Part shown: positions 55,992 to 60,153 of the stretch, in pieces
Position numbering within the stretch: the stretch's first letter is position 1
Layout: every line of letters starts with the position of its first letter
Assembly: GCA_002269645.1 (NCBI GenBank)
Contig: NIVC01001484.1
Location: 111,531 to 175,530 of the forward strand
Reading direction: 5' to 3'
From: Macrostomum lignano
Taxonomy: Eukaryota
DNA length: 64,000 nucleotides
Translations under genes and position numbers: made by a program
Notes under the pieces: model-generated
Databases searched by the model: none
Seen by the model: the letters and a program-made list of their open reading frames with translations, nothing else
What the model was told of the DNA's origin: nothing

Positions 55992-56409
55992 ATGAGTATC
56001 CGAATTTGCATTGTTCTCTTCTGTATGTCGGCTCTGATTACCTGCGAAGGATTTCGAATCTCTGACTCCAGTGATCCGGGTTCTGAAACTGTTAAGGTAC
56101 ATGTAAAAATAAGCCTATTAAAATGTTTTTATCACATTGCTCTTTCACATCTACATGTATCCAAACCACTTCCAAACCAAACCACCAGATCAAGATTTCA
56201 TATTCAAATTTCGAATCTTTTTTGACTGAACAACTCGGAAATGAAATGGCTAACGAACATATTCCACATTCCCGTTGCACACCATATAGAATCCTCCAAC
56301 CAGCGAGAAGTCGGCGTACGATGATGGCCCGGTGTTCAAGGAGCTCCAGGTGAAGAAAAAGTTTTGTTCGGATTACCATCCGCTCACCTGCTTCGGGCTC
56401 GGAGGCTGA
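55992..56409 (+). CDS. Secreted peptide precursor, copy 1 (signal, propeptide, KKK, FCSDYHPLTCFGLGG), 2 exons
   Basis: Exon 1 55992-56102 (or 56096) MSIRICIVLFCMSALITCEGFRISDSSDPGSETVK(VH); phase-0 GT..ATAG intron; exon 2 56290-56409 NPPTSEKSAYDDGPVFKELQVKKKFCSDYHPLTCFGLGG*. Structure is conserved in the paralog. Confidence 0.8.
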
Positions 56410-57627
56410 CTGCAGAAGATTGCCAGTGCAGCTGACTTTGAACACTGACAATATATTAAGTTAAATCGGTCAATATACGAGTCAATTTCGCGTTTCAATC
56501 TACTCGCAAAATTAATATTCAAAAGGCAATTGGCCTGAAAAAGCAGTTTTATGTCGTTTTTATTAAGGACTTAAAGCTCTGAACCTATCGAACGAACGAA
56601 CGAACGAACGAACGATCGAATAATGCCTTGGAATAGAACTCACATATTAATCGTTTCACTATCTTGGATACAATTGCCAGGTAAATTCTTCAAATCAATT
56701 AGAGTTCGTGCTGATTATTTTTAAAAAAAAGTAAGAATTAAGGACACAACTCAGGTGGCATGCAACTCTACCAAATAACCAGTAGCCAAGAAGTATTAGC
56801 TAATTTACCCAGACCTCATTGGCTGAACTAGTATAGCCCAGACCAGAAAGCTACTCAATTATGCATGGCGTTCAATCAGCAAAGATGTGTTAATCTCAGG
56901 TCGTTATACATATAATATGCTCTCATTCGAATACATGCGATCGAATTTAATTAACAAGTTCACACGATCCCAATTGATGCATATTCGCCGATGTGCGCTC
57001 ATAGTCCCAGGCAATATGCTTTCATTCTCATTCGAAATTTAATCAAGCTACAGTCCCAATAGGTGCACACTTAAGGAGTTAAGCTGAAGGTACTGTGTCC
57101 TCGCAATCGAATTTAACTGATTATTAATTAATTACTCCAGCTGGAGCAATGTATTCCATGCAGAGCGATAGCATATCAAAGAAATTTGATTGAATTTCAG
57201 ATTTCAAAAGAAAATACGAGATAATTTGCATCCACCGAAGCATTAAAGGCAATAAAGCTGACTTAACTAGCTCTCTTTCATTTGAATGTTTTTACGAGCG
57301 TCGAAACTATATATGGAATATTCTACTTCTTTGGTTAATCTGCAACACCTACTATTAGTAGCACTAATCGCAGAAGTACGAGCTACCTTGGATTCGGCTC
57401 CAAACCAGTCACCACTATAAACATAGCGCTCCTCCAAAAATCAAATTAAGGAGGCAACCAACTTCGACGAATGAAAGGAGCTCAACATCTGCCCACCTCT
57501 TGGGCATGGCATCTGCCAGTCTAGGAGTAAGGACTGCTAGACTAGAACTATAGCGAAGTGTTTCTATAGTGGTCCTTGTCTGAGACAGGGTTAGGGGCGC
57601 TAACAAGAGACTAAAGGGTTAAAACTA

Positions 57628-58022
57628 AAGACACGAGACAGGGGCGCTCACCAAGAGACAGATGCGCGCACCAAGAGACAGATGCGCGCACCAAGAGACA
57701 GGGGCGCTCACCAAGAGACAGGGGCGCTCACCAAGAGACAGATGCGCGCACCAAGAGACAGGGGCGCTCACCAAGAGACAGGGGCGCTCACCAAGAGACA
57801 GATGCGCGCACCAAGAGACAGGGGCGCTCACCAAGAGACAGGGGCGCTCACCAAGGGACAGATGCGCGCACCAAGAGACAGGGGCGCTCACCAAGAGACA
57901 GATGCGCGCACCAAGAGACAGGGGCGCTCACCAAGAGACAGATGCGCGCACCGAGAGACAGGGGCGCTCACCAAGAGACAGGGGCGCTCACCAAGAGACA
58001 GGGGCGCTCACCAAGAGACACC
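57628..58022. repeat. 20-bp minisatellite with two unit types (AGAGACAGGGGCGCTCACCA / AGAGACAGATGCGCGCACCA)
   Basis: Directly visible. Confidence 0.95.
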
Positions 58023-58067
58023 AAGCATTGGCGCCCGCTCCAATTAAAATTCTTGTGCACACTGCAC

Positions 58068-58460
58068 AGTGCTGGTTGAACACTGGCTGCTGGTTGAACA
58101 CTGGCTGCTGGTTGAACACTGGCTGCTGGTTGAACACTGGCTGCTGGTTGAACACTGGCTGCTGGTTGAACACTGGCTGCTGGTTGAACACTGGCTGCTG
58201 GTTGAACACTGGCTGCTGGTTGAACACTGGCTGCTGGTTGAACACTGGCTGCTGGTTGAACACTGGCTGCTGGTTGAAAACTAGCTGCTGGTTGAACACT
58301 GGCTGCTGGTTGAACACTGGCTGCTGGTTGAACACTGGCTGCTGGTTGAACACTGGCTGCTGGTTGAACACTGGCTGCTGGTTGAACACTGGCTGCTGGT
58401 TGAACACTGGCTGCTGGTTGAACACTGGCTGCTGGTTGAACACTGGCTGCTGGTTGAAGA
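58068..58460. repeat. 18-bp minisatellite (CTGGTTGAACACTGGCTG)
   Basis: Directly visible; it explains the CWLNTG/VFNQQP ORFs. Confidence 0.96.
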
Positions 58461-59713
58461 CGGCTTTACACTGCAAAACCTGAAACGCAGTGCGACCGAA
58501 TCAAAATGCTTATAAGCAAAGTATATCCTGATCCATTACACTACGAGTACATGCATAACCCACTGAATATGATTTCCGATGCAAAACGAGCCGCTGCAAA
58601 CCTTGGGGCGCACCCTGTGAGGCTTTAAAATTTAAGAGTTTTGCAACTGCGTGCTTTACTGAGTTTTGTTGCTGTCTTAAAGTTCTAATGAAAGCATAAA
58701 AATCTTGGAGTAAAACATTCGTACATATGCTGAAGGTCTGGAATGCTGTCAATTGAAACATGCGAGTAAGACTGCCTTTTTCACTTCCGCCTCTGCACGT
58801 TTACAAATCGCTGCTAGTAGGCATTTTTTCTGGATTTTTATACTTGATTACTTTATTTATCTTTTGGGTTCTCTACAATTCGACTGTACGGTTCTATCTG
58901 TCGTCAACTGTTTTGGGGTCTAAAATTACAGAGAACAATAAAATCTCTTTTCGATAAATAGGTTTGTGTGGCAACGAGTTCGGCCGATCAGAAGACTCGA
59001 TGCTCAGTTTAACAAACCGGTCAAGTTGTCCTGACAATGAAAAGGCTCAGAAGGATCGACGTGTGCTAGTTTGGCTGGCTTATGACATCAGATGACACCT
59101 GGTTCGATTCCGTACGCGGCCGGCTTGTGCTCACTGCGTACGCGCTTGTGTAGCTCAGGAGTCAGCGGAGTCGGCCGAACTGCCTCAGCGCTGGCTGTGT
59201 GAGACGATGTCGCTGAAGGCGTTGCGCTATGTAAGATAAGAGGCAAATGCCAGAGTCCTCGGAGTGACATTCCGATAATCCGGTAGTTCTGTCAATTGAG
59301 CCGCAAAGAAAGCAAAAGGAAGAAGCTCGTCGCATGTGCAGTAAATTTGAGTAGAGAGAACTCTTAGGAAGACCCTATGGTGTATAGCAGGTAAATATCA
59401 ACTGAACAGTAGAACTACAAAAGGGGGGAATTCCTCTCCCGACATTTTTTTCTGGCATAAGCTCAGCCAACAGCTCGCAGATCGCCGCCCCAAAAAACAA
59501 AGGCCAGAGCGTTCAATCCTCGGTCCTGCTAACGGCGATTGGCTAGCCGTTAAGCACAACCAATGCAGCTTCATCCGAATAAAATTGGCCGAACTGGGTT
59601 AGTCAGCTCAAGAATCGTGCAAGCATCTGAGCGCATATAACTGTCTACTGTGTCCATAGCCCAGGCTATTAAATTCAACACGCTCTTCTGTTTAGCTGAC
59701 ACAGTTACCTGGT

Positions 59714-60153
59714 ATGAATATCCAAAATTGCATTGTTGTCTTCTGTATGTCGGCTCTGATGACCGGCGAAGGATTTCGAATCTCTGACTCCAAGGATCCG
59801 GGTTCTGAAACTGTTGAGCAACATGTAAGAATACTAAAACTGTTCTTTTTTGACACTTCTCTTTCAACATCTGTATATGTCCATCCGAACCACTTTGAAC
59901 CAGATCGTCCGAAAATTTCATATTTCAATTTTGAATTTTCTTGACTGTAAAACTCCGAAATGGAATGGCTATCCTACCATGCTTTCTACTGCAAAACAGA
60001 CTTTCCCTTAAATCCGACATTTTTGCCCAACAGAATCCTCCAGCCAGCGAGAAGCCGATGGACGATGTCCAGGTGTTCAAACAGCTCCAGATGAAGAAGC
60101 GGTTTTGTTCTTCGATTTACCATCCTCTCTCCTGCTTCGGTCTCGGAGGCTGA
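59714..60153 (+). CDS. Secreted peptide precursor, copy 2 (signal, propeptide, KKR, FCSSIYHPLSCFGLGG), 2 exons, 76 aa
   Basis: Exon 1 59714-59824 (donor GTAAGA); exon 2 60034-60153 after TTTTGCCCAACAG: NPPASEKPMDDVQVFKQLQMKKRFCSSIYHPLSCFGLGG*. Confidence 0.82.

Follow-up and report, generated by a model that had tools for sequence, protein, structure and literature searches.

A tandem pair of two-exon genes in the flatworm Macrostomum lignano is likely to encode lineage-restricted, cysteine-loop signalling prepropeptides

The stretch of Macrostomum lignano DNA analyzed here (assembly Mlig_3_7, GCA_002269645.1, contig NIVC01001484.1, positions 111,531 to 175,530 of the forward strand; 64,000 nucleotides, referred to as the window and numbered from its first letter) contains two short, closely related two-exon genes in tandem, termed copy 1 and copy 2. 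We propose that this pair encodes lineage-restricted prepropeptides for cysteine-loop, C-terminally amidated signalling peptides of the neuropeptide or peptide-hormone type, a reading of the sequence to which we give somewhat better than even confidence. The prohormone reading is favoured by the intact colinear structure of both copies, the annotation of copy 2, the signals for secretion and processing, the constraint on the peptide and the presence of the convertase PC2 in the species. The layout of the predicted peptides is like that of a Cys-loop amidated neuropeptide, and we assign them to no named family: an assignment cannot be made because the defining features of allatostatin C (AstC), excitatory peptide (EP)/CCHamide, SSRP/urotensin-II (UII) and elevenin peptides fail.

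Both genes lie on the forward strand, 3.7 kb apart, and were modelled by reading the sequence and splicing it in silico, which reproduced the two-exon models of the original prediction. Copy 1 starts with the ATG at 55992 and has a first exon of 111 nt (55992-56102, codons 1-37) coding for the signal peptide and the start of the propeptide, an intron of 187 nt (56103-56289, GT...AG, GC content 0.34) and a second exon of 120 nt (56290-56409) with the remaining propeptide, the basic site KKK, FCSDYHPLTCFGLGG and the stop codon. Copy 2 is built in the same way: exon 1 (59714-59824, 111 nt, ATG at 59714) carries the signal peptide and the start of the propeptide, the intron has 209 nt (59825-60033, GTAAGA...ACAG, GC content 0.36), and exon 2 (60034-60153, 120 nt) holds propeptide, KKR, FCSSIYHPLSCFGLGG and stop codon. 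Splicing of the 111 and 120 nt exons yields a product of 76 aa from either copy, and both reading frames are intact and colinear, as are all four splice sites. In each copy the intron is single, in phase 0 and located between codons 37 and 38, 17 residues past the predicted signal cleavage. The donors are conserved between the copies (CAT/GTAAAA at 56102/56103 and CAT/GTAAGA at 59824/59825); the acceptors read ...ATAG/AAT at 56289/56290 and ...ACAG/AAT at 60033/60034. Position 56096, named earlier as a possible alternative donor of copy 1, was rejected, since copy 2 has no GT there, which leaves 56102 as the conserved donor. The copies share no other conserved open reading frame (ORF) on either strand.

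The pair had been described as unannotated, which holds for copy 1, where no gene is called and which has no database entry, but not for copy 2. The spliced product of copy 2 is, residue for residue, the GenBank protein PAA67418.1 (BOX15_Mlig004101g1, hypothetical protein). In the GenBank record (locus L001), which is 100% identical to window positions 49714-64000 over 14,287 bases, BOX15_Mlig004101g1 spans 440 nt and coincides exactly with 59714-60153; the intron is absent from the coding sequence (CDS) of PAA67418.1. The NIVC01 annotation was built from genome-guided RNA-seq transcript assemblies (StringTie, TACO, TBONE) and TransDecoder ORFs (PMC5730564). Because this pipeline is RNA-seq-derived, the junction from 59824 to 60034 should be supported by transcripts. 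Copy 2 would have been discarded if no spliced transcript joined 59824 to 60034, and the GenBank CDS is precisely that spliced product. On the basis of this CDS and the RNA-seq-derived annotation, copy 2 is transcribed, and its splicing agrees with the model. Copy 1, judged from its sequence, appears to be an intact gene whose model is missing from the reference annotation, and its expression is putative. A third, copy-2-like sequence of M. lignano, UniProt A0A1I8H5L9, is found in the same protein cluster and is named 'Secreted protein'. The names of PAA67418.1 and A0A1I8H5L9 carry no functional or family assignment.

The product of copy 1 consists of MSIRICIVLFCMSALITCEG-FRISDSSDPGSETVKVHNPPTSEKSAYDDGPVFKELQV-KKK-FCSDYHPLTCFGLGG and that of copy 2 of MNIQNCIVVFCMSALMTGEG-FRISDSKDPGSETVEQHNPPASEKPMDDVQVFKQLQM-KKR-FCSSIYHPLSCFGLGG, where the first segment is the predicted signal peptide (55992-56051 and 59714-59773). 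In both proteins an apolar run covers residues 5-18, with a Kyte-Doolittle maximum over nine residues of 2.8-2.9, and a cleavage site compatible with the (-3,-1) rule follows residue 20 (CEG/GEG, small residues at -3 and -1), so that these rules recovered the predicted hydrophobic signal of about 20 aa ending in CEG/GEG. The propeptide is 37-38 residues long and, with 7 acidic and 4 basic residues, as acidic as had been claimed. The tribasic site, KKK at 56353-56361 and KKR at 60094-60102, is the sole multi-basic site and stands immediately ahead of the Cys-loop peptide, which extends to the stop codon (peptide 56362-56406 and stop 56407-56409 in copy 1, peptide 60103-60150 and stop 60151-60153 in copy 2). 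The C-terminal layout read at the outset, KKK/KKR followed by FC-x7/8-CFGLGG-stop, was found again in both copies; the loops are SDYHPLT in copy 1 and SSIYHPLS in copy 2. The general features of a prohormone precursor, namely an N-terminal signal (rule-based), a basic convertase site and a glycine as amidation donor, are present. The proposed secreted, prohormone-like layout is correct in view of the one multi-basic site, the terminal glycine and the near-identical protein named 'Secreted protein'.

Prohormones are generally cleaved at basic runs, form disulfide bonds and are amidated, which consumes the last glycine. The sequence features described above are observed, and from this established biochemistry we infer the following processing steps. 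The 20-residue signal peptide would send the 76-aa product to the endoplasmic reticulum and be removed after ...CEG/GEG, and the two C-terminal cysteines would close a ring of 7 or 8 residues. A prohormone convertase, of which M. lignano has a PC2 homologue, would cleave after KKK/KKR within the regulated secretory pathway, and peptidylglycine alpha-amidating monooxygenase would use the terminal glycine. The expected products in their disulfide form are FCSDYHPLTCFGLG-NH2 for copy 1 (computed [M+H]+ 1556.67) and FCSSIYHPLSCFGLG-NH2 for copy 2 (computed [M+H]+ 1627.74), each of them presumably the ligand of a G-protein-coupled receptor. The acidic propeptide would serve as a spacer under little constraint. 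The in situ hybridisation pattern of the M. lignano PC2 homologue suggests expression in the nervous system, and its knock-down is lethal (PMC4490696).

The two genes are part of an 825-bp unit (55741-56565) that is repeated at 59460-60314 with 77% identity, confirming the tandem duplication of the precursor genes. Identity between the copies amounts to 90% in exon 1, 85% in exon 2, 66% in the intron (54% counting gaps), 82% in the 250 bp upstream and 78% in the 156 bp downstream. Outside the unit similarity vanishes, on the 3' side at about 56565, and farther upstream identity is only about 44%. The introns have a GC content of 0.34-0.36, compared to 0.43-0.55 in the exons. At the protein level the copies are 75% identical. 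Their rings differ by one residue (7 in copy 1, 8 in copy 2), and a compensating indel of one codon in the propeptide (SAYDD vs PM-DD) makes up for this difference, so that exon 2 has kept its length of 120 nt in both copies, just as described in the original prediction. A codon comparison likewise bore out the reported differences in the last ten codons, two of them synonymous (CCG/CCT and GGG/GGT) and one a T/S change (ACC/TCC). The duplication together with the intact gene structure is more than chance. Searches with tblastn and with blastn of the unit found no third copy, either inside the window or in a further 6.4 kb outside it.

Divergence between the copies is not evenly distributed over the precursor. 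The ratio of nonsynonymous to synonymous substitution rates (dN/dS) is 0.9 for the whole CDS. It is 0.19 for the basic site and mature peptide, with about 5 synonymous and about 5 nonsynonymous differences, versus 1 or more for signal and propeptide, with 2 synonymous and 19 nonsynonymous differences; this heterogeneity is significant at small counts (Fisher p = 0.022). In exon 1 (55992-56102 vs 59714-59824) all 11 nucleotide differences are nonsynonymous, and the neutral expectation for an exon 1 with zero synonymous changes is P about 0.1. The excess could be due to chance, to diversifying selection on signal and propeptide or to patchy gene conversion. A constrained peptide combined with a free spacer is, on these small numbers, the pattern of a ligand-encoding precursor and the opposite of that of a diversifying toxin. 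The third sequence supports a neuro-endocrine reading as well: apart from a different 5' leader, A0A1I8H5L9 differs from copy 2 within the propeptide only, by two substitutions, and its mature peptide is identical.

The flanks of both genes are conserved too. Upstream of copy 1, a block at 55741-55991 with 82% identity to the corresponding block of copy 2 (59460-59713) is a putative promoter with a short 5' untranslated region (UTR). An inverted CCAAT-like box, GATTGGCTAGC, is kept in both copies (55827-55837 and 59537-59547), and the TATA-like motif TATTAAAT (55951-55958 and 59667-59674) lies 34 nt before the ATG of copy 1 and 34-40 nt ahead of each ATG. The 3' flank of copy 1, a putative 3' UTR (56410-56565), shares 78% identity with that of copy 2 (60154-60314). 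The latter contains a canonical AATAAA at 60222-60227, with which AATATA at 56472-56477 of copy 1 aligns. Two minisatellites are located in the spacer between the copies and belong to neither gene, a 20-mer repeated 19 times (57635-58020) and an 18-mer repeated 21.6 times (58070-58458).

Several observations weigh against a signalling precursor. No homologue outside M. lignano was found, neither among 5.8 billion clusters with a word-indexed search using a profile of both precursors, in which the sole match was the cluster of PAA67418.1 itself, nor among 1.84 billion representatives with an exhaustive HMMER profile search. Conservation of the peptide is therefore judged from 2-3 paralogues and from small counts, with about 10 substitutions in its mature part. 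The signal-peptide call comes from a crude rule-based check only. As to copy 1, its exact product is absent from a collection of 15 billion proteins, the GenBank record lacks a gene call at this place, AATATA stands in for the AATAAA poly(A) signal seen in copy 2, and its KKK is a weaker convertase site than KKR. The gene ID Mlig004101 is not contained in the supplements (expression tables) of four M. lignano papers. The precursors have no match in Pfam, a search of literature full texts retrieved neither the gene ID Mlig004101 nor CFGLG-type peptide strings, and no published catalogue of Macrostomum or flatworm neuropeptides covering this peptide family was found in the literature.

The main rival explanation is that the product is an exocrine secreted peptide, i.e., a toxin, a defence peptide, a pheromone or a component of seminal fluid or of the adhesive gland, from a lineage-specific family that expands in tandem. 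This would fit an orphan family that the databases searched show in M. lignano only, the tandem duplication plus the further near-identical sequence A0A1I8H5L9, and a signal and propeptide evolving at dN/dS of 1 or more, with 11 of 11 nonsynonymous differences in exon 1. The processing signals are no obstacle, as hormone-derived venom peptides, for instance the consomatins, share them (PMC9048919). What speaks against an exocrine peptide is that the mature peptide is conserved and the propeptide variable. Toxins usually evolve in the opposite way to the M. lignano pair, keeping the signal conserved while the mature peptide is hypervariable, as in conotoxin evolution. The original prediction had offered a toxin-like secreted peptide family as its alternative; the secreted layout stood, but a toxin-like product is not favoured, as conservation and not diversification is seen in the mature peptide. 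An antimicrobial role is also unlikely because the peptide is short and near-neutral, neither cationic nor amphipathic. Altogether we regard an exocrine product as unlikely, albeit as the competitor to be taken most seriously.

Under a signalling reading, membership in the AstC or in the EP/CCHamide family would be sub-cases. The original prediction suggested an AstC/somatostatin-like neuropeptide, which would make the genes a flatworm branch of this superfamily with a ring enlarged to 7-8 residues, an added GLG-amide tail and a receptor of the AstC/somatostatin type. Like the precursors of AstC, AstCC and AstCCC, those of M. lignano are short and carry a single Cys-loop peptide at the extreme C-terminus behind a basic site. 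[quoted passage not shown] An aromatic residue follows the second cysteine as in AstC, and amidated AstC variants such as scallop ...CYamide are known (PMC5996578). Furthermore, the heptad YHPL[T/S]CF (aromatic-x-Pro-aliphatic-Ser/Thr-Cys-Phe) is similar to arthropod FNPISCF. Similarity was assessed by a permutation test with fixed cysteines against a panel of 15 Cys-loop peptides. The three spiralian AstCs compared (Aplysia, oyster, scallop), unlike the arthropod references, were taken from papers. Arthropod AstC, AstCC and AstCCC ranked on top with permutation p values of 0.003-0.014 per comparison, uncorrected. When the heptad was anchored on FNPISCF, p was about 0.0004, in a register picked post hoc.

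The defining features of AstC peptides, however, are missing. AstC is defined by two cysteines six residues apart (PMC8786951; PMC5996578) and protostome AstC rings are reported to have always 6 residues (PMC9048919), whereas the M. lignano rings have 7 and 8. In most AstC peptides the loop contains an Asn, FxP occurs in many, and the loop opens with an aliphatic or aromatic residue (PMC9048919); the M. lignano loops lack Asn and start with Ser. YHP in the loop and Phe after the second cysteine are present, but this Phe continues into GLG(G) rather than ending the peptide, which results in an extra GLG-amide tail. Although M. lignano is a spiralian, similarity to the AstCs of oyster, scallop and Aplysia is not above permutation (p 0.3-0.65). 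The match to the arthropod peptides becomes borderline once corrected for 15 comparisons, and homology at the precursor level was not found in the 5.8 billion clusters, the 1.84 billion representatives or Pfam. With the somatostatin, urotensin-II and protostome SSRP-like peptides, including the cone-snail consomatins, the M. lignano precursors share the C-terminal Cys-loop, the phase-0 proregion intron and processing at a basic site. Unlike these, their loops contain neither Trp nor Lys and consequently no W-K core (C.WK.C or FWK), no second, phase-1 intron splits the mature peptide, and sequence similarity is lacking.

The AstC/somatostatin suggestion is hence partly supported and best taken as a lead rather than as membership: layout, phase-0 intron, aromatic residue after the second cysteine and the YHPL[T/S]CF heptad agree with it, while the 6-residue ring, the loop Asn, the rule for the first loop residue, the WK motif and the similarity to spiralian AstCs do not. 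We consider it rather improbable that the genes encode the first AstC/somatostatin-superfamily ligands recognised in Platyhelminthes, missed owing to their ring of 7-8 residues and their GLG-amide tail. If they did, the 'invariant' 6-residue ring of protostome AstC would not be invariant, and the paralogues, with rings that are one residue apart in size, would offer a natural experiment on how ligand and receptor co-evolve.

A divergent EP/CCHamide (GGNamide) type peptide would be the second named family. The frame of copy 2 equals the lophotrochozoan EP frame x-C-x8-C-F-G-x-x-NH2, with one residue before the first cysteine, an 8-residue loop, a 4-residue amidated tail starting with Phe-Gly and a length of 15, as is seen when FCSSIYHPLSCFGLG-NH2 is compared to Aplysia KCHGRWAIHACFGGN-NH2 (PMC12969411) and oyster SKCKGPWANHMCFGGNamide (PMC4200219). 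Disulfide and amidation are in addition hallmarks of EP/CCHamide peptides (PMC12969411). On the other hand, the similarity of the residues does not exceed that under permutation (p 0.11-0.19), the tail is FGLG and lacks the GGN/GGH/GAH-amide motif, and the ring of copy 1 has 7 residues. The position in the precursor differs as well: EP/CCHamide peptides sit right after the signal, and behind them come G-KR and a long C-terminal part (PMC12969411), whereas the M. lignano peptide is C-terminal, after the propeptide. The EP/CCHamide-like frame is equally loose a match as that to AstC, and we think it very unlikely that the genes belong to this type. Elevenins have a C-x8-C spacing, Asp before the first cysteine, a Pro in the loop and Arg-Gly after the second cysteine, and they are not amidated (PMC10175484). 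Copy 2 resembles them in its Cys spacing of 8, a Pro in the second half of the ring and a Gly two positions past the second cysteine; it differs in having Phe instead of Asp before the first cysteine, Phe-Gly without Arg after the second and a terminal Gly. Elevenin membership was rejected on these differences and on a similarity that is not above permutation (p 0.2-0.7).

That there is no functional peptide at all, copy 2 being a transcribed meaningless short ORF and copy 1 a decaying duplicate, could be argued from the lack of annotation of copy 1, the absence of its product from the collection of 15 billion sequences, its weakened poly(A) signal and the whole-CDS dN/dS of 0.9, but we find this the least credible explanation, given that ORFs, splice pairs, compensating indels, basic site, cysteines and CFGLGG-stop have all been kept despite 23% nucleotide divergence and that constraint is concentrated in the peptide.

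M. lignano is a transgenic, regenerating flatworm model in which prohormone processing is essential, as the lethal PC2 knock-down shows (PMC4490696). A candidate ligand pair with predicted masses and paralogues differing by one ring residue would provide a directly testable entry point. The pair bears on whether flatworms keep cyclic peptide signalling of the AstC/somatostatin or the EP/CCHamide type. In practical terms, one apparently missing gene model, that of copy 1, is flagged in the reference annotation.

The window as a whole has a GC content of about 47% and is very rich in minisatellites of 18-34 bp; scans of it for tRNA genes and Rfam families returned nothing. Just upstream of the peptide genes, 50001-54000 forms an AT-rich island (GC 0.31-0.34) in a window of otherwise 45-55% GC. 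The density of tandem repeats is extreme throughout, with 43 rows in the Tandem Repeats Finder (TRF) output (e.g., 39700-44901, 7204-9251 and 18381-19552), among them 259 copies of a 20-mer arrayed over 5.2 kb and a (GACA)n tract of 1.2 kb.

Further coding regions are found on the reverse strand. An uninterrupted, apparently intronless ORF of 309 aa (11661-12590) encodes a RagA/Gtr1-type small GTPase (Pfam PF04670, E 2.5e-98). Between 45728 and 50723 lie pieces of a HOIP/RNF31-like RBR E3 ubiquitin ligase, with IBR domains at 45728-46162 and UBA_HOIP at 47011-48582; Pfam gave no match for the ORF at 48438-50723. A HOIP/RNF31-like paralogue with an RBR C-terminal domain is located at 36484-38625. 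Three long paralogous ORFs of 694-986 aa (13190-15274, 22028-24988 and 32495-34900), likewise without a Pfam match, contain NZF-like W.C..C.F.N motifs, a Cys-rich C-terminus and a very long ERLRKEREEA coiled-coil repeat that varies in copy number and coincides with 30-bp TRF arrays. A segmental duplication relates about 13000-20800 to about 22000-31200 and includes the near-identical ORF pairs 15978-16502/25629-26153 and 19671-20732/30101-31165, which fits the reported recent genome duplication and the highly duplicated genome of M. lignano. Two adjacent reverse-strand ORFs at 28792-29815 are, judging by a DNARPH-like motif, presumably fragments of a mariner-type transposase; 28792-29232 has no Pfam match. 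The next annotated gene downstream of the peptide genes, past the 3' end of the window (L001 18197-20097), encodes an EF-hand/dynein-light-chain protein of 177 aa.

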